Below, in pieces: positions 3,037 to 25,722 of a DNA stretch of 25,722 nucleotides (position 1 is its first letter; each line of letters starts with the position of its first letter). The notes under the pieces were generated by a model. That model was not told the DNA's origin. It saw only the letters and a list, made by a program, of their open reading frames with translations, and made no database searches. The translations under genes were made by a program, and so were the position numbers. This DNA is from Macrostomum lignano (Eukaryota): assembly GCA_002269645.1 (NCBI GenBank), contig NIVC01002551.1, forward strand, positions 1 to 25,722. Reading direction: 5' to 3'.

Positions 3037-4307
3037 TCAGTTGTTGTTGATGTTCCTGCAGTGCGCGGTGTTCACCGGCTCGCAGACGCCCGGGTGACCC
3101 GAGGCCGCCTGAGGCGGCGCCGTTCCGACCCTCCACACGCAGTTGGGGTCGCCCAGCTCGGCGCCGTTGGACCGGCCGTCTTGGTCGGAATCGGCGCGGC
3201 AAAGTCCCTGGGTCCAGGCCTGGCGTGAGGCAAAGTGCACAAAATCTGGCTTTTTATTCAGCGCGAGAACCGGAGTTTAAGGCTGATTTCCAAATCTATA
3301 AGCAGAGGCTACTAATGGAAAATAAAACACAGTTAAAATTGCTTTTGTTTCTAGATATTTATCTAGAGAGAATATTGCTTGATCTGGCAAATCACTTCTT
3401 CGTTGCTAAGCTGAGTGGGCATTCTGCAATTCATTGGTTGGTTTGTTATTAAAAAACGGAGCACAAGTTCTACTGTCTCGAGGCCATCGCAGCTGAGGGG
3501 ACAAGACTGAAAGCCCTGTTTATCTTTTTGCGGAGCCTCTGAAGCCTGTCAGGAACGCCTTTCTGGTTTTCGGAGCATCGGACTCACGACTGAAAGGTCG
3601 GGGGTTCGATTCTCGACCTACTCGGAATAATTTGTATTCTTAAGCAAGACACTTAAATCTGCATTGCTTCAGTTTACCCAGCTGTAAAGTGGGTGCCAGC
3701 ATTAGCTGGGGTAATTAAGGGTCGGTGTTGCGACCCCCCCAGTCCTGGGACTGAACAGCCGTACGCAGCCTTCAGATGCGCCGCGCAATAGCTGCGGCTG
3801 AGCTGTCGGTTGCACATCTGCCCTTAATGATACCTGTCATAAAAATATCTGGGACGGCTAGAGGTGTCAATCTGGGGCTGCCAGAGGTGTCAATCTGGGG
3901 CTGCCAGAGGTGTCAATATGGGACTGCTAGAGGTGTCAATATGGGACTGCTAGAGGTGTCAATCTGGGACTGCCAGAGGTGTCAATCTGGGACTGCCATG
4001 GAGGTGTCAATATGGGACTGCCATGGAGGTGTCAATATGGGACTGCCATGGAGGTGTCAATCTGGGACCAGATTCAATAACTCACATTATTATTGAGCCC
4101 AAAATCGATTCCAAAGGGATTCCGCATGCCGGCGCCTTCCTTGCTCCTGTGGCCCACGCCCGGCCAGGTGCCTCCAGGTGTGAAGGGGTCTGGGACGCTG
4201 TTCCCGTTGGGGATCCTGGCTTGATACGTGCGCCTGGCCTGCGACTCCCCAACAAAGCAGAGGGCCACCGCGGCCACCGCTAGAAGGAGCGCCGACCTTT
4301 TCTGCAT
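3037..4307 (-). CDS. Temptin-like secreted protein, 2 coding exons, ~134 aa
   Basis: Exon 1 4307-4086: signal peptide MQKRSALLLAVAAVALCFVGESQA, then YQARIPNG..PDP..GGTWPGVGH..GAGMRNPFGIDF. Donor GTGAGT, phase 0. Exon 2 3219-3037 after a pyrimidine tract and CAG: AWTQGLCRADSDQDGRSNGAELGDPNCVW...HPGVCEP...HC. These motifs match the temptin / N-terminal domain of invertebrate DBH-like monooxygenases. Confidence 0.9.
3560..3780 (+). mobile_element. tRNA-derived SINE with CORE-like central domain (boundaries approximate)
   Basis: Pol III box B GGTTCGATTC at 3603-3612. Then GCAAGACACTTAAATCTGCATTGCTTCAGTTTACCCAGCTGTAAAGTGGG (~3644-3693), closely resembling the MIR/CORE consensus (GCAAGTCACTTAA...CTCAGTTTCCTCATCTGTAAAATGGG, recalled from memory). 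Box A is degenerate. Confidence 0.6.
3852..4070. repeat. 22-23-bp minisatellite (GAGGTGTCAATCTGGGACTGCCA), ~9-10 copies, in the temptin intron
   Basis: Direct tandem copies ending ~15 nt from the splice donor at 4085. Confidence 0.9.
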
Positions 4308-5120
4308 GCTTGAATCAGACGAGTTGCTGTTAAAGTTCACTTCAATGGGTAACTCAGTTATGGCCATTCGGTTGGAGTATATATATGACTTAAGCACGCT
4401 GTTATTAGCGAATATACGAATGCACTTTAGCCATGCCGCTCAGTCTATTCGCTAATCTCTCTCCCCAGTGATAATAAGAAAGGCTGAGCACTACTCTCTG
4501 TTTAATCATAATTTTGCACACAAACTATGACGCCATCAGGCAGCGTTCTCAAGCTCAAGCAGGAATCGCAGGTTGGACTGCGTCGTGCCGCTAATGCTTC
4601 TTAATATATTCTTATCCAGTTTAACAGGTGGCGATACGGCCGAAGCAGATAGGTGGTCACTTATTAAGACTGCGGCAGAAACTGTCATTCACTGTGCCAG
4701 AGGGTGCGAGAGGTTGAAGGACCGACCTGGTGGAACTTTTGAGGCAGAAAATCGATAAATCGATCAACCCCCCATGGGGAGGGGGGTAGAAAAGGAGCCG
4801 AGGTTGAAAGGGATACCGAAAAAATCGATAATACAATCGAAGCTTTCAGTTCAAACCCAGCTATTTTTCAACACCAATCCTTAAATTCCTAGCGTAATAA
4901 TTTAACTGCTCAGAAAAAAGCTGCTAATTAATAATAATCTGACGTGACAGTCTGTACAAAAATTTTAAACTGTGGCGCACTACTTTAGCAAGCCTCCGTT
5001 AACCGTGAGGCCACTGCTGGCTTTGTTGGGCCGTCAAGCGATGACGCGAGTAGCAAGCAATATCAGGCAGTGCACGGCACGGGAGATTAATAACGCAGAT
5101 ATATAAGCGAGCACCGTGCA

Positions 5121-11400: not shown

Positions 11401-13321
11401 GAAAACTTAGAATACAAAGATATTTTAGAACATGGCGAGTGAAATTATAGCGCTTTTAATGTGGATGAACTACTGCGAGTAGTGCTGTGAAAATGTGGAA
11501 AACAATTTAAAAAGTCATCACTACGCGCCTCTCTCGTTGACGGTAATGGCGAACTGGTGCGGCTTCCAGCCGGTGAGGATGCCCGCATAGCCCGCAAAGG
11601 AGACGGCGGAATAAAGCAGCTGAAATGGCGGGTATTTTCTGTACGCGATATTTATTTATGATATCGGGGTTCTTGCTTGAGCAACACCAGTGGTTACCTT
11701 GCCTCTTCTATAAAAGTCGACCCTGATGGTGACCTTCTCCAGCATGTCAGTCTGGGGCATCGTGTTGCCGTAGTCCAAATTTCTTCCGTGCCAGAGGCCG
11801 CCGTTCCGGTCGTTGGCGATGATGCCGGTGCAGAAGCTGCAGCAAAAAGGGCAGATTTGATTGCTGGAAGAACTTTCTGGCTGCGGTTGCCTGACGAGTT
11901 TGCTAGCTGGTTTCTAGGAAACTAAGACTGGGTTCAAGCAATGCGTGTACAGTTGGTTTTATACTGGTATTTAATGCTTATTTCGGGTTTGCGTGTCTCC
12001 AGGAGTGACAAACTGATCCAGCATCCATTTAGAAGAGGCAAAAGCCTACGCGGTGACATCGTAGATCAGATTGAGCAGCACGATGTCTCCGAGTGACGCA
12101 TTCACCGTCTTCGAAATGCCTAAAAAGTGCATTAGTTATTGGGATCATCTAATTTGGTTGAGGCAGGGTTGAACTGCTAAACAGGGTATTTTACATTGGT
12201 GCATTCGAAGGTTCCTCTCACCTACAACTCCGCTCCATAGTCGGCCGGCAGGTGGGTGTCCAAATCTGCAGCAATTACGTCTGCCAGGTACTTCAACTCC
12301 AGAGGTACTGATCTGAAAATTTTCTGTGTTATCTTCGTGGGCGAATACACATTATAATCCTATAAATGGGCGAATTTTGTTTTAAATGCGTTTCCATAGC
12401 ACCCAACACGACCATTCCTTTGCCCCAACCCCTAATGATCTGAAAACTGAGCCTCCAATGTACACTCACTATTCACTGAAACCTCTGCCCCGAATGTACA
12501 CTCACTATTCACTGAAACCTCTGCCCCGAATGTACACTCCTATTCACTGAAACCTCTGCCCCGAATGTACACTCACTATTCACTGAAACCTCTGCCCCGA
12601 ATGTACACTCACTATTCACTGAAACCTCTGCCCCGAATGTACACTCACTATTCACTGAAACCTCTGCCCCGAATGTACACTCACTATTTACTGAAACAAA
12701 CCTCTGCCCCGAATTTACACTCACTATTCACTGACTCTGCCCCGAATGTACACTCACTATTTACTGAAACATCTGGGCCTCGAATGTACACTCACTGCTT
12801 ACTGAAGCTTCTGCCCCAATGCACACTCACAATTTACGGAAACCCTTGCCCCAATGCACTCTCACTATTTACTGAAACCCTTGCCCCAATGTACACTTTC
12901 TATTTGCTGAAACCTCTGCCCCCGATGTATAGTGAGGCCAACCCTATCCTCCGGCCGTCCCGTACATTGAGGACAGAACTCTATCTCACTTCACTGACGG
13001 TATTAAGAAACCGTTTCATCCCTCTCTACTAGAGTTTTTGTATTGCAGAACTCCACAACGGCAATGGTGTAGTAACTCACCCCAGAAACGCTTTGATCAA
13101 CTGCTGCGTGTCGGCTTTGAAGTCGGCCACCACCGCGGCCCACCTGGTGGCTGGGTCCTGGTCCAGGTCGACCCGGTAGAGCGGAGGGGCCCGGCCAGCG
13201 CCGCGGGGGACCGGCTGAGCCTGGCCAATGAGGGCCAGCGGGACAGCGAGCCCGGAGGTCCCAGCAGCCACCAGCGCCAGCAGAACCGCCGCCCCAGTTA
13301 CGGCGCGCCAGTTGTCCACAT
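8426..13321 (-). CDS. NAAA: N-acylethanolamine acid amidase / acid ceramidase family Ntn-hydrolase, 10 exons, ~387 aa after correcting two 1-nt deletions
   Basis: Exons 13321-13081, 12312-12222, 12119-12050, 11836-11698, 11619-11529, 11233-11142, 9313-9141, 9055-8993, 8913-8818, 8531-8426. Motifs: signal peptide, PLYRVDLDQDPATRW, LGDIVLLNLIYD, autocleavage nucleophile FCTGII (Cys at 11830-11832), HGRNLDY, FAGYAGILTG, NERDKG, LIAPVYYIISG, WFIVETNYD, DDRR, VNNNHTVYT. NERDKG and the overall layout resemble NAAA more than ASAH1. One base is missing in each of exons 1 and 2; intron 5 is GC-AG. Confidence 0.9.
12455..12930. repeat. 36-bp minisatellite (AATGTACACTCACTATTCACTGAAACCTCTGCCCCG) in NAAA intron 1
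   Basis: About 6 near-perfect copies that decay toward 12930; translates as MYTHYSLKPLPR repeats. Confidence 0.92.
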
Positions 13322-13775
13322 TTTTAGCTTCAAGCAACTCTGGAAATTCTGCTAAAGCAAAAGCAACTCAGCAAACTTGATCGCATAAGGTTACTTTAAG
13401 AGCTTTAGCTAACTAAATAAGGCAGATAAGCCGGGCCCCAGTTCAGTATCAAACAGAAGGACTTGCATTGCAGCGCTCAAAGCAGATCTATTTTTAGATG
13501 CTTCGCAAGCCTGCAAAAGTGCGGCTCAGTTATAACAAACTGCTAATTCGTTTTTTTGTATCTGCGGGCGAGAGTTGAAGGCGAGATACAAGAGCTGGCT
13601 AGGCTTAGAAACACAAGCCCGAGCCGCCGGTCTCCATGGTCGCGGAGCAGCTGCCCCTAGCCGCAGTGTGTGCAACGCAGGCTCGTACATTGGATAATTG
13701 GCTACACAAGACTCGAATAATAGGAGGCGCAGGGGTGAGAGACGGGCACAGCGAAGTGTGGAGGGCAGGTGAGCG

Positions 13776-13782
13776 TATAAAG
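13776..13782 (+). promoter_or_regulatory. TATA-like element upstream of the calmodulin-like gene
   Basis: TATAAAG ~85 nt before the ATG at 13864, inside the ~540-bp divergent NAAA/EF-hand spacer. Confidence 0.4.
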
Positions 13783-13863
13783 CTTAAGCTGCCACCTCAG
13801 ACAGCCCTGTCTGTTGCTGCTTTGTGTCTTCCTACTGAAATTGTTTAGAGTTATCAACCAGAG

Positions 13864-15808
13864 ATGGCAGCGGTGTCCGCGGTTCCTGAGCAGTACTACG
13901 CTGCTCTGCAAGAGGCCGGCGTGTCAGTTGAGGAGGCCAGCAAGCACTACTTGGTGTTCAAGATGTTCGACAAGGACAACTCAGACACCATGGATGCTGG
14001 AGAGTTATTTGCCTGCCTGCAGGTATGTTCAATTAATCTGCTCTTCTCGCCGTAATACTCGTAAAATCCGTTCCTGCCGGCGGGTTTGGCAGGGCTGGCC
14101 ATAGACTATCGCTGCCCAAGTTCAACACTCCGCTGTGCAGAGCCTGATCAGGAATCTGATGGCTCCTCATATTGTCAAGCGTTGCTGACCAATACTCGGC
14201 GGGAACTCTCTGAGAACTTGTCTCACCCATAGACTAAAACTTGATCTCTTCAGGGACGCCCTGCCCCAACGCCTCTCTCAGCAGACTTCCACCTCACCCC
14301 TGCCCCAACGCCTCCCTCAGCAGACTTCCACCTCACCCCCTGCCCCAACGCCTCTCTCAGCAGACTTCCACCTCACCCCTGCCCCAACGCCTCCCTCAGC
14401 AGACTTCCACCTCACCCCCTGCCCCAACGCCTCCCTCAGCAGACTTCCACCTCACCCCCTGCCCCAACGCCTCTCTCAGCAAACTTCCACCTCACCCCCT
14501 GCCCCAACGCCTCTCTCAGCAACTTCCACCTCACGCCCTCCCCCAACGCCTCCCTCAGCAGACTTCCCCTCACCCCCTGCCCCAACGCCTCTCTCAGCAA
14601 ACATCCACCTCACGCCCTCCCCCAACGCCTCCCTCAGCAGACTTCCCCTCACCCCGTGCCCCAACGCCTCCCTCAGCAGACTTCCACCTCACCCCCTGTC
14701 TCAACGCCTCCCTCAGCAGACTTCCACCTCACCCCCTGCCCCAACCCCCTCAGTAGACACCCACCTCACGCCCTCCCCTAACCCCTCGCTCAGCAGACAC
14801 CCACCTCACGCCCTGCCCCAAACAGAGCTGCCAGCTCTAATGACCAGCTTAATGAGTTTAGAATCGTTAAAAAAATCACAACTTAGTCTGTCACTCAACC
14901 CCTTATGGGATAAAAGGGAAAATTATGAATCTTCACAGACATTGGATTGCATTGACTAGGTCGGTATCCCCAATCACAGGTGATGGGCCAGGCTCCAAAG
15001 TCGAAAGAGGAGGTCGAAAAACTGCTTAAATTGTACGACAAGGACGCCAGCGGTTCCATGAACTTTGTGGAATTTTCCCAGTTGATGGGTCAGGTGTGCA
15101 AGCCGCCTCAGGCTGTCCGCGACGATTTGATGGCGAGCTTCCAGAAGCTGGATAAAGACAACAGCGGCTACATCGAGCGAGACGAACTGCACGATGCGAT
15201 CTTCGGCTCGGGGAATTCCGCCCTCACCGAGAAGGAGTTCGACAAGCTCATGCGAGAGGCGGATGCCAACGGGGATGGCAAGATCGACTACTCCGGTGAG
15301 GGCTGGGTGCAGGGTTGGGTGCAGGGTTGGGTGTAGGGTTGGGTGCAGGGTTGGGTGTAGGGTTGGGTGTAGGTTTTGGCGCAGGTTTGGGTGCAGGGTT
15401 GGGTGCAGGATCAGGGTTACCCCTTTACCCATCCAAACCTGCACTAAGTTGCCATGAGCAGACAACAGCTGTCAGTTACATGTACTTCGCACCAGTTATC
15501 AATCTTACATCTGAAAGATTTAACAGCTAACCAAACAAGCTGAGCTCCGAATTTCCTTCCCGGCCGCAACTCAAACCAAACTTCTCCGATCCGCAGAGTT
15601 TCTGAGCACTCTGATGACGGACATCACGAAGATGATTGAGACTAAAAAGCAGAAAGTCCACGACAAAGGCTCCGGTGGCGGCGATGGGGACAAGAAGAAG
15701 GGGGGCCACGGCCACAAGCAGCGAAGCCACAGCCGTGGCAGCCGCGGCAGCAGATCGCGGAGCAGCAGCCGAGGCAGTCACAGATCCCGGCACTCGAAGT
15801 CGTCTTAA
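13864..15808 (+). CDS. Calmodulin-like 4-EF-hand protein with basic Arg/Ser/His/Gly-rich C-terminal tail, 3 exons, ~228 aa
   Basis: Exon 1 13864-14022 (donor GTATGT, phase 0), exon 2 14980-15295 (donor GTGAGG, phase 1), exon 3 15597-15808. EF loops DKDNSDTMDAGE, DKDASGSMNFVE, DKDNSGYIERDE, DANGDGKIDYSE; the last Glu is formed across the splice junction. Too divergent to be calmodulin itself. Confidence 0.9.
14258..14820. repeat. C-rich ~39-40-bp minisatellite (CCCCTGCCCCAACGCCTCCCTCAGCAGACTTCCACCTCAC) in EF-hand gene intron 1
   Basis: About 14 tandem copies; source of the Pro-rich 14241-14756 ORF. Confidence 0.92.
15298..15410. repeat. 12-bp G-rich repeat (GGGTGCAGGGTT), ~9 copies, starting at the splice donor
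   Basis: Begins within the GTGAGG donor of EF-hand gene intron 2. Confidence 0.9.
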
Positions 15809-15954
15809 CTGCTTCGATAATTAAAGACTGGTTTTCAGCCACCGCCCCTCACTTCTCAGTAAATATATATTGGGGGATTAATTATATACTTTTGGTAAAC
15901 TTCTGCTGATCGTTTTAATTGTTTTCACAAACGATGTCTCTCACTGTCCTCACC

Positions 15955-16942
15955 TCACCTCACCGATATAGACTATAGACTGTACACAGGGAATGTACAT
16001 TGGCATATCAGCTCTGACCTCACCGATATAGACTATAGACTGTACACAGGGAATGTACATTGGCATAGCAGCTCTGACCTCACCGATATAGACTATAGAC
16101 TGTACACAGGGAATGTACATTGGCATAGCAGCTCTGACCTCACCGATATAGACTATAGACTGTACACAGGGAATGTACATTGGCATATCAGCTCTGACCT
16201 CACCGATATAGACTATAGACTGTACACAGGGAATGTACATTGGCATATCAGCTCTCACCTCACCGATATAGACTATAGACTGTACACAGGGAATGTACAT
16301 TGGCATAGCAGCTCTGACCTCACCGATATAGACTATAGACTGTACACAGGGAATGTACATTGGCATATCAGCTCTCACCTCACCGATATAGACTATAGAC
16401 TGTACACAGGGAATGTACATTGGCATAGCAGCTCTGAACTCACCGATATAGACTATAGACTGTACACAGGGAATGTACATTGGCATATCAGCTCTGACCT
16501 CACCGATATAGACTATAGACTGTACACAGGGAATGTACATTGGCATATCAGCTCTCACCTCACCGATATAGACTATAGACTGTACACAGGGAATGTACAT
16601 AGGCATATCAGCTCTGAACTCACCGATATAGACTATAGACTGTACACAGGGAATGTACATTGGCATAGCAGCTCTGACCTCACCGATATAGACTATAGAC
16701 TGTACACAGGGAATGTACATTGGCATATCAGCTCTGAACTCACCGATATAGACTATAGACTGTACACAGGGAATGTACATTGGCATAGCAGCTCTGACCT
16801 CACCGATATAGACTATAGACTGTACACAGGGAATGTACATTGACATATCAGCTCTGAACTCACCGATATAGACTATAGACTGTACACAGGGAATGTACAT
16901 TGGCATGGCAGCTCTGACCTCACCGATATAGACTATAGACTG
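15955..16942. repeat. Highly homogeneous 60-bp tandem array, 16 full copies plus a partial
   Basis: Unit CACCGATATAGACTATAGACTGTACACAGGGAATGTACATTGGCATATCAGCTCTGACCT repeats exactly every 60 nt from 15961 to 16920. Confidence 0.97.
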
Positions 16943-17465
16943 AATCTACAGTGTACACAGGAAGTTTCCACGGAGATTTACCTGTTTCATATTTGAAGTT
17001 CTGAGGTATATGTCACCTTTAATGTACACGTCAGATGTTAATAGTATAAAATCTTTGCAGCACAAATTTGTATTTGAATCAAAAAACCAGTGAAAGCAGA
17101 CGCTGATTTCACACGAGATGTGTCAAGAGTTGATACTCAATTATCAACTTCTGAATACATAAATCAGGTGGTTTGAAAACAGACAAAATTGAAATTGGAA
17201 AGAAGAGAATACAGAAAAACTAATTTCATAATTATCCGGTGAACAATTTTTTTGCTATTAGTAAAGCTAGCAAAGCAACTGGAGAAAACAGGGTGACGAC
17301 GGCAGCTAAATACGAGTAAATACCGACAAGCAGCCCTGCTTCTAAGAGAAAACAGAGATGTAATAACCAAATAGAAATCTGAATAAGTGATGAAATTTGT
17401 GGCACTTTTTAATTTATAGCAATGAATCCAGGCAACCGAGCCAATCAGATATCATTTTGCACCTC

Positions 17466-20400
17466 TGTCTAATACCAGCTCCCCAGTGTCTAATGGCAGC
17501 TCCCAGTGTCTAATGGCAGCTCCCCAGTGCCTAACGGCAGCTCCCCAGTGCCTAATGGCAGCTCCCTATGTCTAATGGCAGCTCCCCAGTGTCTAATGGC
17601 AGCTCCCCAGTGTCTAATGGCAGCTCCCAGTGTCTAATGGCAGCTCCCAGTGTCTAATGGCAGCTCCCAGTGTCTAATGGCAGCTCCCTGTGTCTAATGG
17701 CAGCTCCCCAGTGTCTAATGGCAGCTCCCAGTGTCTAATGGCAGCTCCCAGTGTCTAATGGCAGCTCCCAGTGTCTAATGGCAGCTCCCAAAGTCTAATG
17801 GCAGCTCCCTGTGTCTAATGGCAGCTCCCTGTGTCTAATGGCAGCTCCCTATGTCTAATGGCAGCTCCCTGTGTCTAATGGCAGCTCCCTGTGTCTAATG
17901 GCAGCTCCCTGTGTCTAATGGCAGCTCCCCAGTGTCTAATGGCAGCTCCCCAGTGTCTAATGACAGCTCTCAGTGTCTAATGGCAGCTCCCTGTGTCTAA
18001 TGGCAGCTTCCAGTGTCTAATGGCAGCTCCCTGTGTCTAATGGCAGCTCCCAGTGTCTAATGGCAGCTCCCCAGTGTCTAATGACAGCTCTCAGTGTCTA
18101 ATGGCAGCTCCCTGTGTCTAATGGCAGCTCCCCAGTGCCTAATGGCAGCTTCCAAGTGTCTAATGACAGCTTCCCTGTGTCTAATGGCAGCTCCCAGTGT
18201 CTAATACCAGCTCCCAGTGTCTAATACCAGCTCCCAGTGTCTAATGGCAGCTCCCAGTGTCTAATGGCAGCTCCCAGTGTCTAATGGCAGCTCCCAGTGT
18301 CTAATGGCAGCTCCCCAGTGTCTAATGGCAGCTCCCCAGTGTCTAATACCAGCTCCCAGTGTCTAATGGCAGCTCCCAGTGTCTAATACCAGCTCCCAGT
18401 GTCTAATACCAGCTCCCAGTGTCTAATACCAGCTCCCAGTGTCTAATGGCAGCTCCCAGTGTCTAATGGCAGCTCCCAGTGTCTAATGGCAGCTCCCAGT
18501 GTCTAATGGCAGCTCCCCAGTGTCTAATGGCAGCTCCCCAGTGTCTAATGGCAGCTCCCCAGTGTCTAATACCAGCTCCCAGTGTCTAATGGCAGCTCCC
18601 AGTGTCTAATGGCAGCTCCCAGTGTCTAATGGCAGCTCCCTGTGTCTAATGGCAGCTCCCTGTGTCTAATGGCAGCTCCCCAGTGTCTAATGACAGCTCT
18701 CAGTGTCTAATGGCAGCTCCCTGTGTCTAATGGCAGCTCCCCAGTGCCTAATGGCAGCTTCCAAGTGTCTAATGGCAGCTCCCAGTGTCTAATGGCAGCT
18801 CCCTGTGTCTAATGGCAGCTCCCAGTGTCTAATGGCAGCTCCCTGTGTCTAATGGCAGCTCCCCAGTGTCTAATGGCAGCTCCCTATGTCTAATGGCAGC
18901 TCCCTGTGTCTAATGGCAGCTCCCTGTGTCTAATGGCAGCTCCCTGTGTCTAATGGCAGCTCCCCAGTGTCTAATGGCAGCTCCCCAGTGTCTAATGACA
19001 GCTCTCAGTGTCTAATGGCAGCTCCCTGTGTCTAATGGCAGCTTCCAGTGTCTAATGGCAGCTCCCTGTGTCTAATGGCAGCTCCCAGTGTCTAATGGCA
19101 GCTCCCCAGTGTCTAATGACAGCTCTCAGTGTCTAATGGCAGCTCCCTGTGTCTAATGGCAGCTCCCCAGTGCCTAATGGCAGCTTCCAAGTGTCTAATG
19201 ACAGCTTCCCTGTGTCTAATGGCAGCTCCCAGTGTCTAATACCAGCTCCCAGTGTCTAATACCAGCTCCCAGTGTCTAATGGCAGCTCCCAGTGTCTAAT
19301 GGCAGCTCCCAGTGTCTAATGGCAGCTCCCAGTGTCTAATGGCAGCTCCCCAGTGTCTAATGGCAGCTCCCCAGTGTCTAATGGCAGCTTCCAGTGTCTA
19401 ATGGCAGCTCCCAGTGTCTAATACCAGCTCCCAGTGTCTAATACCAGCTCCCAGTGTCTAATACCAGCTCCCAGTGTCTAATGGCAGCTCCCAGTGTCTA
19501 ATGGCAGCTCCCAGTGTCTAATGGCAGCTCCCAGTGTCTAATGGCAGCTCCCCAGTGTCTAATGGCAGCTCCCCAGTGTCTAATACCAGCTCCCAGTGTC
19601 TAATGGCAGCTCCCAGTGTCTAATGGCAGCTCCCAGTGTCTAATGGCAGCTCCCTGTGTCTAATGGCAGCTCCCCAGTGTCTAATGGCAGCTCCCCAGTG
19701 TCTAATGACAGCTCTCAGTGTCTAATGGCAGCTCCCTGTGTCTAATGGCAGCTCCCCAGTGCCTAATGGCAGCTTCCAAGTGTCTAATGACAGCTTCCCT
19801 GTGTCTAATGGCAGCTCCCAGTGTCTAATACCAGCTCCCAGTGTCTAATACCAGCTCCCAGTGTCTAATGGCAGCTCCCAGTGTCTAATGGCAGCTCCCA
19901 GTGTCTAATGGCAGCTCCCAGTGCCTAATGGCAGCTCCCCAGTGTCTAATGGCAGCTCCCCAGTGCCTAATGGCAGCTTCCCAGTGCCTAATGGCAGCTC
20001 CCCAGTGTCTAATGGCAGCTCCCAGTGTCTAATACCAGCTCCCAGTGTCTAATGGCAGCTCCCCAGTGTCTAATGGCAGCTCCCCAGTGTCTAATACCAG
20101 CTCCCAGTGTCTAATGGCAGCTCCCAGTGTCTAATACCAGCTCCCAGTGTCTAATGGCAGCTCCCAGTGTCTAATGGCAGCTCCCAGTGCCTAATGGCAG
20201 ATCCCCAGTGTCTAATGGCAGCTCCCCAGTGTCTAATATCAGCTCCCCAGTGTCTAATGGCAGCTCCCAGTGCCTAATGGCAGCTCCCCAGTGTCTAATG
20301 GCAGCTCCCCAGTGTCTAATGGCAGCTCCCAGTGCCTAATGGCAGCTCCCCTGTGTCTAATGGCAGCTCCCCAGTGTCTAATGACAGCTCCCCAGTGTCT

Positions 20401-20657
20401 AATGGCAGCTCCCCAGTGTCTAATGGCAGCTCCCCAGTGTCTAATACCAGCTCCCCAGTGTCTAATGGCAGCTCCCCAGTGTCTAATGACAGCTTCCCAG
20501 TGTCTAATGGCAGCTTCCCAGTGTCTAATGGCAGCTCCCAGTGTCTAATGGCAGCTCCCAGTGTCTAATGGCAGCTCCCAGTGTCTAATGGCAGCTCCCC
20601 AGTGCCTAACGGCAGCTCCCAGTGTCTAATGGCAGCTCCCTATGTCTAATGGCAGTT
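17466..20657. repeat. 20-21-bp satellite (GTGTCTAATGGCAGCTCCC(C)A), ~3.2 kb, roughly 155 copies
   Basis: Continuous array with recurrent variants (ATACCAG, GACAGCTCTC, CTTCCAAG). Its last unit overlaps the RBCK1-like stop codon. Confidence 0.97.
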
Positions 20658-23600
20658 CATGCAGTTCGGGTGGCACTTCTTGTTGTTCACCCGGCAGCGG
20701 CAGCCGCCAGAGGTGTCACCCTGGCCGCCGGGTCCCCAGCGCGGGCCGCGGTGGCCCAGCAGATCTCGGTGCGGCACACGGAGCACATCAGCCAGTCGCA
20801 GCCTTCGCGCTTGGAGAGAAACACCTGGCATTTGGGGCACTTCTTGGCCTCTCCGGACTGCAGCATGTCCTGCACGATTCGGGAGTGACAGTGGGAAACC
20901 AGTTGCAGTTAGTCTGCTATCCTATAAACTTTACACATGGTGTCACTCAATCAGTCAGTGTCACTCAATCAGTCATGGGTGTCACTCAATCAGCCAAGGT
21001 GTCACTCAATCAGGCAAGGCTGTCACCCAATCAGCCAATAGTGTCACTCAATCAGCCAAGGTGTCACTCAATCAGCCAAGGTGTCACTCAATCAGTCAGT
21101 GTCACTCAATCAGCCAAGGGTGTCACTCAATCAGCCAAGGCTGTCACTCAATCAGCCAAGGTGTCACTCAATCAGCCAAGGCTGTCACTCAATCAGCCAA
21201 TAGTGTCACTCAATCAGCCAAGGTGTCACTCAATCAGCCAAGGTGTCACTCAATCAGTCAGTGTCACTCAATCAGCCAAGGGTGTCACTCAATCAGCCAA
21301 GGCTGTCACTCAATCAGCCAAGGTGTCACTCAATCAGCCAAGGCTGTCACTCAATCAGCCAATAGTGTCACTCAATCAGCCAAGGTGTCACTCAATCAGC
21401 CAAGGTGTCACTCAATCAGTCAGTGTCACTCAATCAGCCAAGGGTGTCACTCAATCAGCCAAGGCTGTCACTCAATCAGCCAAGGGTGTCACTCAATCAG
21501 CCAAGGGTGTCACTCAATCAGCCAAGGGTGTCACTCAATCAGCCAAGGTGTCACTCAATCAGCCAAGGGTGTCACTCAATCAGCCAATAGTGTCACTCAA
21601 TCAGCCAATAGTGTCACTCAATCAGCCAAGGTGTCACTCAATCAGCCAAGGTGTCACTCAATCAGCCAAGGTGTCACTCAATCACTCACCTCCAGTTTCT
21701 GCAGTCCCAGCTTGGCATTCTCGTCGTTCTCAGCGCGCCTGCGCAGGTCGTCCTGGTATTGCTGGCAGGTGAGGTCCTTGTGGGAGGCCCTGCAGGTGAC
21801 GCAGTTGTGCTCCTGGCACACCTCGCACTCAAACTCGTTAACATTGTCCACCAGTTCAACGAATGCCTCGCAGTTTGGCGTCACGCAGTGGAAGGCGTTG
21901 GTGATGACGGCCTCGGCCTGGCGGAGCCCCAGCCGCTGCAGCCTGGCCAGCTGCTCATCGGTGAGCAGCTCCTTGAGCTCGGCCTCGGTGACAGTCTGCT
22001 GGCACGGCTCGCACGGGCAGATGACGGGCAGCCGGTCGGAGTTGAGCGCGTGGTCCCTCAGGCAGTTCTCGCAGACCTCGTGGCCGCACTCGCGCAGCCG
22101 CAGGCCCCGGATGCCGTCGCCGTCGTCATCGTCGCCGCCAACGTCGCAGAGGCAGATCGGGCACTCGAAGCCCTGCTGCGCCGGCACGGGGATCAGCGAG
22201 CCCTGCGTCAGGTTCATGAGCTCGCGGAAGTTGCGCTCGCGCTCCCGCTCGGTCTGCAGATTGCGCAACAGGGGGGGGGGGCAATTCTGATTGATGAGGA
22301 TTCCGGCTTCCCACCGTGCGACTGCCTGCAGGTGTACTTTAGGCCCAACCCCAGTGCCGCATTAATGTAAACTAAGCCAGCGGGCTTCCAGTCTTTCCTG
22401 CCCTTCAGGCACACTTTCGGCATTTAAATAGCGGTCACTGTGTCCCTGGAAATTCACTCTTGTCACTGTGTTCCTGGAAAGTCACTTCGTCACTGTGTCT
22501 CTGGAAAGTCACTCCGTCACTGTGTCCCTGGAAAGTCACTCCGTCACTGTGTCCCTGGAAATTCACTCTTGTCACTGTGTCCCTGGAAAGTCACTCCCTC
22601 ACTGTGTTTCTGGAAAGTCACTCTTGTCACTGTGTCTCTGGAAAGTCACTTCGTCACTGTGTCTCTGGAAAGTCGCTCCGTCACTGTGTCCCTGGAAAGT
22701 CACTCCGTCACTGTGTCTCTGGAAAGTCGCTCCGAGCGTATTCCGAGAGGTCAATCAGCAAGATTCCTGGTAACGGTGCAATATTGGAAATTCACATCAT
22801 CAGTCCAACCGATAAAGGCAAATTTGAGAAGTCAGCCAGCCTGCCTGGATCCGTGCAGTCAGCCGTTCATTGTCAAACAATAAATTAATGCCTGTGAAGA
22901 ATAGCAGAGGTTTCGTATTAGGTATTTCTTGAGAGAAAAATCTCTTTGACCAAAAAATCTGTTTTATATTTCACGGATTATCAAACGTGTCTAAAATTTT
23001 TGCTAGGAAATTAGGCAGCTATTGGCCAAGTGGGGACAATATCCACTTTGGAAAGAAATAAAAACACTGGATAACCGCATGGCAAGCAAAGAAAATGATA
23101 AGAGATAATAGTAAATAAAAGATTCGAGAAATAGTGTACACGATTTACAGAAGCTGATTTCCAGAAACAGGGAATCTTAGCGCTATCAGGACACCGGTGA
23201 CAGGTGATCTCAGATATCAGGACACCTGTGAACACGTGATCGCAGATATCAGGACACCTGTGAACACGTGATCGCAGATATCAGGACACCTGTGAACAGG
23301 TGATCTCAGATATTAGGATACCGGTGAACAGGTGATCTCAGATATTAGGATACCGGTGAACAGGTGATCTCAGATATCAGGACACCTGTGAACAGGTGAG
23401 CTCAGATATTAGGACACCAGTGACAGGTGATCTCAGATATTAAGATACCGGTGAACAGGTGATCTCAGATATTAAGATACCGGTGAACAGGTGATCTCAG
23501 ATATTAAGATACGGGTGAACAGGTGATCTCAGATATCAGTACACCGGTGACAGGGAATCGGAACGCATCTTAGGGCATATTGTCACAGTGCTATCACAAT

Positions 23601-24967
23601 GCCAAATGTAAAAGAAGTTCAATAAGATTCCAATGAGGTAGTGGAACACTATGGATCAGCAGCTTCGCTAGGTTCATCCGCCTTGTTCTCTTCATCATCC
23701 GAGTCGCTGCTGCTGGAATCCGCGGCGGCGGCGGTCATCGGGTTCCTCAGAGCCCGGTGTCTCAATGTAGCTCTCTGTGGGATCGGTTGCGCTGGTCTGA
23801 CTTGGCCCCGCATTTGCCTTGCTTAACAAAACATTTCCACTTTTTAAAAGCGCATGTACAAAACAGTGCAGTTCTGCCGCTCGGCTCTCAGCTTAGTCGC
23901 GGAGCTCGATCGCTGATTGGCTGGCAATCTAGCTTTTCAGGCTTCTGATTGGCTGCTTGGGTCACTACCCTGCCCCAGGTAATCTAACCCTGCCCCAGCT
24001 ATTCTACCCCTGCACAGCTAATCTACCCCTGCCACAGCTAATCTACCCCTGCCACAGCTAATCTACCCCTGCCACAGCTAATCTACCCCTGCCACAGCTA
24101 ATCTACCCCTGCCCCAGCTAATCTACCCCTGCCCCAGCTAATCTACCGCTGCCACAGCTATTCTACCCCTGCCACAGCTAATCTACCCCTGCCACAGCTA
24201 ATCTACCCCTGCCACAGCTAATCTACCCCTGCCCCAGCTAATCTACCGCTGCCACAGCTATTCTACCCCTGCCACAGCTAATCTACCCCAGCCACAGCTA
24301 ATCTACCCCAGCCACAGCTAATCTACCCCAGCCACAGCTATTCTACCCCTGCCACAGCTAATCTACCCAGCCACAGCTAATCTACCCTGCCACAGCTAAT
24401 CTACCCCTGCCCCAGCTAATCTACCGCTGCCACAGCTATTCTACCCCTGCCACAGCTAATCTACCCCAGCCACAGCTAATCTACCCCAGCCACAGCTAAT
24501 CTACCCCTGCCACAGCTAATCTACCCCTGCCCCAGCTAATCTACCGCTGCCACAGCTATTCTACCCCAGCCACAGCTAATCTACCCCTGCCACAGCTAAT
24601 CTACCCCTGCCACAGCTATTCTACCCCTGCCCCAGCTATTCTACCCCTGCCCCAGCTAATCTACCCCTGCCACAGCTATTCTACCCTGCCACAGCTATTC
24701 TACCCCTGCCCCAGCTATTCTACCCTTGCCCCGGCCTACAATTGTTCACATGCAGCAAGAAATCAGCCCATAGAACATTAAGACAAAGCAGGGACTCGCA
24801 ACTCACGAATTTAAGAAATTCGCCGTGCAGCTTCAGCTGCCGCTGCTCCTCTTCTGCCTGCAGCTCCGCCGGCACCTCGTAGTCGGCGGCCGCGCCCCAC
24901 CGCACATCTGGCAGCCGGGCCGCACCGGCTCGTTGCGGAAGGTGCACTTGGGACAGCTCCAGCCTGG
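20646..24967 (-). CDS. RBCK1: RBCK1/HOIL-1-like RBR E3 ubiquitin ligase, 3' part (NZF, RING1, IBR, RING2); upstream exons lie beyond the window
   Basis: Exon 24967-24807: [24 protein letters not shown]. Exon 22253-21690: RING1 [23 protein letters not shown] and [22 protein letters not shown]. Exon 20869-20646: [21 protein letters not shown], then the HOIL-1-specific [33 protein letters not shown]-stop. All junctions are phase 0 once one missing base is restored in each of the first and last exons. Confidence 0.93.
20935..21688. repeat. 20-21-bp minisatellite (GTGTCACTCAATCAGCCAAG) filling the last RBCK1 intron, with a 162-bp higher-order period
   Basis: Marker variant ATCAGTCAGT at 20950, 21091, 21253 and 21415. 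Confidence 0.95.
22432..22735. repeat. 27-28-bp minisatellite (GTCACTGTGTCCCTGGAAAGTCACTCC), ~11 copies
   Basis: Tandem copies in an RBCK1 intron; source of the VTVSLESH ORFs. Confidence 0.92.
23190..23552. repeat. 32-bp minisatellite (CAGGTGATCTCAGATATTAGGATACCGGTGAA / ..GGACACCTGTGAA), ~11 copies
   Basis: Period of 32 measured between CAGGTG at 23297 and 23329. Confidence 0.92.
23913..23954 (-). promoter_or_regulatory. Pair of CCAAT (NF-Y-type) boxes 32 bp apart inside an RBCK1 intron
   Basis: CTGATTGGCT occurs twice, with ATTGG at 23916-23920 and 23948-23952. Confidence 0.4.
23965..24730. repeat. 20-bp minisatellite (CTACCCCTGCCACAGCTAAT), ~38 copies
   Basis: Tandem copies in an RBCK1 intron, ending ~75 nt from the donor at 24806. 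Confidence 0.95.
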
Positions 24968-25004
24968 CTGCGGGGGCGGAGAGGGCGGAGAAGGCGACGG
25001 TAAC

Positions 25005-25722
25005 GTGACACATTAAAGGATGCGAATTCTGAGATGATGGCACACATTAAAGGATTCTGAAATGGCGGCACACATCAAATGATTCTGAAATGGTGCACAC
25101 ATTAAAGGATTCTAAAATGGCGGCACACAACAAATGATTCTTCTAAAATGGCGGCACAGATCAAAGGATCTTAAGTGGCGGTCCACATCAAAGAATCCTG
25201 AATGGTGACATGCATCAAAGGATGCAAATCGAGATGGCGGCACAAATCAAAGGATGCAAATCGAGATGGCGGCACACATCAAAGGATGCAAATCGAGATG
25301 GCGGCACACATCAAAGGATGCAAATCGAGATGGCGGCACACATCAAAGGATGCAAATCGAGATAGCGCACACATCAAAGGATGCAAATCGAGATGGCGGC
25401 ACACATCAAAGGATGCAAATCGAGATAGCGGCACACATCAAAGGATGCAAATCGAGATGGCGGCACACATCAAAGGATGCAAATCGAGATAGCGGCACAC
25501 ATCAAAGGATGCAAATCGAGATGGCGGCACACATCAAAGGATGCAAATCGAGATGGCGGCACACATCAAAGATACAAATCGAAATGGCAGCACACATCAA
25601 AGGATGCAAATCGAGATAGCGGCACACATCAAAGGATGCAAATCGAGATGGCGGCACACATCAAAGGATGCAAATCGAGATAGCGGCACACATCAAAGGA
25701 TGCAAATCGAGATGGCGGCACA
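25005..25722. repeat. 32-bp minisatellite (GGCGGCACACATCAAAGGATGCAAATCGAGAT), runs off the window end
   Basis: Near-perfect copies from ~25200, increasingly degenerate toward the RBCK1 acceptor at 24968. Confidence 0.95.

Follow-up and report, generated by a model that had tools for sequence, protein, structure and literature searches.

A 20-nt minisatellite that overlaps the stop codon of an RBCK1 homologue in Macrostomum lignano and was probably born in place

In the flatworm Macrostomum lignano, the last codons of a homologue of RBCK1 (HOIL-1) run directly into a long array of short tandem repeats, and this arrangement raises the question of whether the array grew out of the end of the gene or came to lie beside it. 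We examined the locus in a 25,722-nt stretch of DNA (contig NIVC01002551.1 of assembly GCA_002269645.1, positions 1 to 25,722, hereafter the window, to which all coordinates refer), in which the gene and the array are both read on the minus strand. We conclude that the array was probably born at the locus, by ordinary tandem duplication, from sequence that included the last codons and the stop codon of RBCK1. The array is of a kind already known, and the locus is a tidy example of a known process, of modest interest.

The array and its overlap with the RBCK1 coding end

Using Tandem Repeats Finder, we detected a minisatellite array at 17466-20655 (minus strand) with a period of 20, 156.6 copies, 92% matches, 1% indels, and a score of 5041. 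Cutting the array at its TTAG anchor yielded 156 units. Of these, 99 measure 20 nt and the other 57 are 21 nt long owing to a fourth G in the GGG run; the consensus unit in the sense of the gene is ACACTGGGAGCTGCCATTAG. Twenty-two variant types of unit are present across the array and are ordered in higher-order blocks, and the TTAG and the GAGCTG core are (nearly) unchanged over the 156 units. The element is thus a head-to-tail array with a unit in the 10-100 bp range of minisatellites (period 20, 156 units), and it has the single locus, the variant repeats (22 types), and a length (3190 nt) within the roughly 0.5-30 kb that are characteristic of such arrays; it occurs once within the window, with genes flanking it on both sides. 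An earlier reading of this DNA, made from the letters alone (the sequence-only reading), had called it a 3.2-kb satellite. The 156-unit array is real, but it is a minisatellite and one of at least 15 arrays in the window, not a special satellite.

The coding end of the gene, AAC TGC CAT TAG, lies at 20657-20646 on the minus strand, with the stop codon TAG at 20648-20646. Its last 10 nt, CTGCCATTAG (20646-20655, minus strand), comprise the C of the Asn codon, the Cys and His codons, and TAG, and the same 10 nt form the first partial repeat of the array. When the repeat period was extended back into the gene, it matched at 10 of 10 positions and then at 2 of the next 3 (GA-C), after which the agreement fell to background. 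Array and coding sequence therefore share 10 nt and are not separated by a spacer. The 10-mer is present 123 times in the window, where chance alone would give 0.06 occurrences. One of the 123 is the gene end, the other 122 fall within array units, and a search of the whole window gave no occurrence outside the array and the gene end. The sequence-only reading had given the same last codons at the same positions, counted 11 of 12 identical nucleotides between the unit and the gene end, and placed the start of the array at the gene end without a spacer; the reading frame confirms the first point, the count is correct, and the exact 10-nt overlap agrees with the third.

Among the 30 orthologues printed, 26 have Cys-His-stop as their C-terminal end. 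This marks the coding end as ancestral and the array as derived, in line with the previous argument that the conserved C-H-stop predates the array. The coding-derived share of the unit is 10 of 20 nt, and the other half is former 3′ untranslated region (3′UTR).

The far edge of the array continues beyond its last TTAG as ACA-GAGGTGC-AAAATG, to be compared with ACA-CTGG-GAGCTGC in the unit, which amounts to 10 matches in 14 positions with one 4-nt deletion. This decayed last partial unit (17459-17468, minus strand) can be written as ACA, 4 nt missing, and GAGGTGC against the unit ACACTGGGAGCTGC. Its score was reached by 1.2% of shuffled flanks (P = 0.012) and by none of 5000 positions sampled in neighbouring unique sequence. 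Both edges of the array fade into unique local sequence, and a foreign insert is absent. The near edge, matching at 10 of 10 positions and then fading, together with the decayed far edge, is the pattern expected when an array grows from local sequence. We found no transposon hallmarks (terminal inverted repeats, target-site duplication, or transposon sequence) at the array edges; the flanks carry no inverted repeats, and repeat sharing between them is not above chance. The earlier proposal that the gene terminus seeded about 155 copies therefore holds as amplification in place, given the overlap, the fading edges, the lack of transposon hallmarks, and a unit private to the array in the window, but it has to be narrowed, since only 10 of the 20 nt derive from the coding sequence and the rest is former 3′UTR.

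A 9-nt direct repeat, AAGTGCCAC in the gene sense, is found at 20670-20678, 24 nt before the stop, and at about 17399-17407, just past the ATTAAA described below, and had suggested a larger old duplication. This repeat, the only 9-mer shared by the flanks, was put down to chance, as its alignment score of 10 compares with a mean of 9.4 and a maximum of 12.5 for control unique blocks.

A putative founding duplication and the predicted transcript

From these features we infer a founding step in the form of a short tandem duplication of about 16-20 nt that would have straddled the stop codon, taking in the last 10 coding nucleotides and the first bases of the 3′UTR. The duplicated segment would be CTGCCATTAGACA(CTGG)GAG, with its limits at AA|CTGC in the gene and at GAG|GTGC in the early 3′UTR. 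The mechanism was probably slippage during replication, or else unequal exchange, with the imperfect direct repeats GAACTGC (gene) and GAGGTGC (UTR) as partners; it would predict a duplication junction GAG|CTGC, which is the junction carried by every unit. The site before the array would then read ...AACTGCCATTAGACA(CTGG)GAGGTGCAAAATG..., with one unit or none. Such a duplication would be neutral for the protein, as the first copy would retain an intact C terminus and stop. Because this first coding copy and its stop stay untouched, the duplication would be invisible to the protein and free to expand, and more slippage and unequal exchange could later have brought the array to 156 units, the latest event being a duplication of a block of about 1 kb (1035 nt). 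Without its arrays the gene is compact (last intron, 74 nt; stop to ATTAAA, 58 nt), so that a duplication of 20 nt could quite plausibly, and would often, reach a boundary. We infer that the array is a neutral by-product of a strong genomic tendency toward minisatellites.

The inside of the array bears on its later growth. A string of 25 units comes back at a lag of 51 units, and nucleotide comparison inside the array revealed a block of 517 nt duplicated at 100% identity with a lag of 1035 nt (51 units), one copy at 18866-19382 and the other at 17831-18347 (both minus strand). Either the block was duplicated very recently or the assembler over-expanded the array here. The 36 units nearest the gene (19905-20645, minus strand) are the most heterogeneous part of the array, with 15 variant types and 58% 21-mers, and 8 of the 10 singleton variants of the array fall among them. 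The pattern of 20- and 21-nt units repeats between blocks and is therefore a property of the sequence rather than random noise.

We also asked where the transcript would end. None of 15 poly(A) hexamer variants, AATAAA and ATTAAA included, occurs in the array, which extends to 13 other hexamers the earlier statement that the unit lacks these two. The first ATTAAA, a candidate poly(A) signal at 17408-17413 (minus strand) that overlaps a TATAAA at 17418, lies 53 nt past the array, and the distance from the stop to its end is 3238 nt, of which 58 nt remain once arrays are excluded. As the array has no hexamer and the first ATTAAA lies 53 nt beyond it, the mRNA is predicted to include the whole array, and it probably carries all of it in its 3′UTR. 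If the ATTAAA at 17413-17408 is used, the locus predicts an mRNA with a 3′UTR of about 3.2 kb that is 98% repeat; a 3′UTR once compact (about 60 nt from stop to ATTAAA) would have been stretched to this length by the array. The sequence-only reading had left a choice between a repeat-filled 3′UTR and an end at a non-canonical site, and the position of the ATTAAA favours the former over the latter.

The host gene and neighbouring arrays

Judged by its conceptual translation, the host gene encodes a true RBCK1-type protein. In a protein search, the RING1-IBR-RING2 region showed 39-48% identity to proteins of insects, fishes, and a bird, and RING1, IBR, and RING2 are 41-74% identical to RBCK1-like orthologues. 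Fragmentary M. lignano models match the same region at 74-100% over shared stretches, one of them (P0031) at 100% over 48 residues. A RanBP-type (NZF) zinc finger (Pfam PF00641, 29.2 bits against a cut-off of 27) and an IBR domain (Pfam IBR, 34.5 bits against a cut-off of 24.3) are present, as is a RING1-IBR-RING2 module that ends ...C-x-x-C-H, with CH at the C terminus.

Four exons were recognised, all on the minus strand. The terminal exon (20646-20869), which holds RING2 and the stop, ends ...CHPNCMNCH*, has the 3′ splice site GTGCAG|GAC, and was aligned to orthologues P0001 and P0002 with tblastn. The RING1 and IBR exon (21690-22253) contains the Pfam IBR match and has the donor GAG|GTGAGT, an acidic exon lies at 23650-23774 with an uncertain donor at 23650, and the NZF exon is at 24807-24967. 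The frame and donor of the acidic exon gave no clean join to the next exon. The 5′ part of the gene, where an N-terminal ubiquitin-like domain would fall, lies beyond the window end at 25722. The M. lignano model P0032 holds the translation of a 32-nt intron array (23184-23554), similar but not identical to it; therefore, another copy or assembly of the RBCK1 locus has the same intron array.

The RBCK1 identity given by the sequence-only reading is thus upheld, but that account missed that the reading frame of the gene is interrupted by two 1-nt breaks, near 20750 and 24881. The first, at 20745-20761 (minus strand), lies between ...TEICWAT and (R)GPRWGPGG and can be written ACC(C)GCGGC, one C having been lost from a C run; P0034, a model from another copy, is in frame across it (ICWATRG). 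The second, near 24881-24884 in the NZF exon, lies between ...GGARPP and DYEVPAEL (GARPP|DYEVPAEL) and resembles the loss of one C in a C run. Beyond these two breaks, the four exons are free of premature stops, retain their Cys and His ligands, and align well to orthologues, and the splice sites are intact and canonical, the donor at 23650 being doubtful. Uncorrected errors of a long-read consensus are judged more likely to account for the breaks than a real pseudogene.

At least 15 tandem arrays, whose periods lie in the range 12-60 nt, together account for 39.7% of the window; within 12457-25722 their share is 62%. In 13 of the 14 other arrays compared, the units are unrelated to that of the stop-codon array, as expected if arrays arise locally. 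Two other arrays begin at 5′ splice sites and show the edge pattern of the stop-codon array. One is a 20/21-nt minisatellite (20939-21684, minus strand) in the last RBCK1 intron. Its start is separated by 5 nt from the 5′ splice site of that intron, of which it occupies 91%, leaving 74 of 820 nt outside the array. Its units, TTGAGTGA / TTGAGTGACACC..., echo the donor GTGAGTGA; they have TT where the donor has GT and are therefore not cryptic donors. The other is a 12-nt array, GGTGCAGGGTTG x 9.7 (15295-15409), which begins at a GGTGAGG donor-like site closing an EF-hand exon, and this site is itself the first, diverged unit (9 of 12 positions) of the array. The EF-hand exon (14980-15409 region, plus strand, confirmed by Pfam) converges on RBCK1 and ends ...GDGKIDYS at the GGTGAGG. 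A protein search with this neighbouring EF-hand protein found no close relative, which is a weak negative.

Some smaller features of these arrays were recorded. A minus-strand open reading frame (ORF; 4074-4397) is closed by a GTGAGT donor-like site about 11 nt from the end of the array at 3847-4068, and the 7-mer GGTGTCA is found in the units of three same-strand arrays (those at 3847, 6754, and 20939). A core motif common to all arrays was considered and dropped, as no single core stands out despite an excess of shared k-mers among the units.

Alternative explanations and known systems

Several observations weigh against birth in place. The candidate founding repeats GAACTGC and GAGGTGC agree at only 5 of 7 positions, and the unit is shown to be private only at the scale of the window. 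Further, a 23-nt array at 3847-4068 (plus strand; unit ATCTGGGACTGCCAGAGGTGTCA) resembles the focal unit, in that both contain CTGGGA(G)CTGCCA (p ~0.007, with no correction for the 14 comparisons), and CAGAGGTG-CAA is found both in this array and in the focal far flank (p ~0.04). This likeness could reflect a related, dispersed family or chance. Were it a family, the array might be a dispersed or transposon-borne satellite that landed beside the stop or recombined there through CTGCCA microhomology, its likeness to the gene end being partly chance; CTGCCA is also found within the unit of the 23968-24730 array, and 6-8-mers are shared more often among the array units of the window than after shuffling (p 0.002-0.02). 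Yet an exact 10-nt overlap in the right phase has a chance of about 1e-6 for a fixed junction (4^-10), the edges carry neither terminal inverted repeats nor foreign sequence, the stop-matching TTAG part is missing from the 3847 unit, and the 13 other arrays are unrelated to the focal unit. Array-like matches were also absent from the protein and contig collections: the longest ORF inside the array had no match in the protein collection, and scans of metagenome and viral contigs for the exact unit dimer gave 0 matches, both weak negatives, as the flatworm genome is not among these collections. We consider this origin quite unlikely. Very unlikely, in our estimate, is that the array length, its internal order, or the exon junction is a product of long-read mis-assembly, by over-expansion or a chimeric join. 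The 517-nt duplicate at 100% identity with its 1035-nt lag could be such an artefact, the two losses of 1 nt from C runs in conserved codons point to an uncorrected long-read consensus, and Mlig_3_7 has expanded or collapsed variants, with 36% of scaffold length chimeric (PMC10733133). The exon-array junction, however, sits within the 10 nt common to gene and unit and has ordinary unique sequence on both flanks, and the unit variants are interspersed in a structured, non-random order, with a 20/21-nt pattern that recurs between blocks; an artefact could alter the number of copies, yet neither the unit nor its overlap with the stop codon would arise in that way.

The same two frame breaks can be taken as a mark either of error-prone sequence or of a decaying copy. 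The latter would make this RBCK1 a decaying homeologue, a pseudogene in a neopolyploid genome, in which relaxed constraint let the array expand; such a reading would modify birth in place and is compatible with it. The doubtful donor at 23650 and the redundancy offered by three subgenomes in M. lignano (PMC10733133) are in its favour, but every break is a single-base homopolymer loss, premature stops and lost Cys or His ligands are otherwise absent from the four exons, the splice sites are canonical, and database models from older assemblies carry many comparable indels at differing positions, so we judge decay unlikely. The possibility that selection keeps the array as a regulatory element of the 3′UTR (sites for RNA-binding proteins or small RNAs, or a trigger of long-UTR decay by which HOIL-1 dosage is adjusted) appears highly improbable. 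The TTAG and GAGCTG core would fit it, as would the placement of the array between the stop and the first ATTAAA, but the near invariance of this core in a young, homogenising array needs no selection, array RNA is no more structured than shuffled controls (z = -0.24), Rfam gave no match anywhere in the window, and introns and intergenic DNA nearby are filled by comparable arrays. We would give little credence to a broader idea as well, namely that minisatellite growth in compact 3′UTRs and introns differs among the three homeologues and alters expression (through long UTRs, slow or faulty splicing, or small RNAs), and so tunes or silences duplicates; if it were true, this RBCK1 copy, with a repeat UTR of 3.2 kb and with frame breaks that may be real, would be a duplicate caught during tuning or silencing.

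Birth in place agrees with what is known of the genome. Simple and tandem repeats make up 15% of the M. lignano genome (PMC5730564), and the window, which matches M. lignano protein models at up to 100%, is about 40% tandem array. The three homeologous subgenomes of the species differ by about 2%, a figure that climbs to 32-36% once long insertions are included (PMC10733133). The text searched in PMC5730564 and PMC10733133 gives genome-wide fractions, and arrays that start at stop codons or splice donors are not described there. With three homeologues per gene, a comparison among them would yield rates of array birth and growth. Minisatellites derived from transposons (PMC3389668, PMC6947457) are similar in unit size and array form, but the edges of the RBCK1 array are without transposon sequence, inverted repeats, and target-site duplications, and one edge is a conserved coding exon. 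In other respects, the locus is an ordinary product of a repeat-prone genome.

Variable number tandem repeats (VNTRs) are known from 3′UTRs, for example the 40-bp repeat of human SLC6A3 (DAT1), with about 3-11 copies well inside the UTR. The RBCK1 array is likewise a minisatellite between a stop codon and a poly(A) signal, the latter a candidate in this case, but its 156 copies account for 98% of the presumed UTR, and it starts inside the coding sequence. Another parallel is the proposal made by Haber and Louis in 1998, for which we follow the summary in PMC6947457, that minisatellites are born by slippage or unequal exchange between direct repeats of 5-10 bp. The 20-nt unit, the imperfect 7-nt repeats GAACTGC...GAGGTGC that flank the array, the GAG|CTGC junction, which would be their recombinant, and the grading of the edges into local sequence are all compatible with this summary of the model, although the repeat pair and the junction carry little weight by themselves. 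In contrast to it, the flanking repeats here match at only 5 of 7 positions, the founding segment would straddle a stop codon in an event that is itself reconstructed, and the units carry the last three codon positions of the gene. A tandem duplication across a stop codon would come at no cost to the protein, and because one half of the founding segment is a deeply conserved coding end (Cys-His-stop), the segment can still be read. Thus, the RBCK1 locus may serve as a clean, datable natural example of minisatellite birth.

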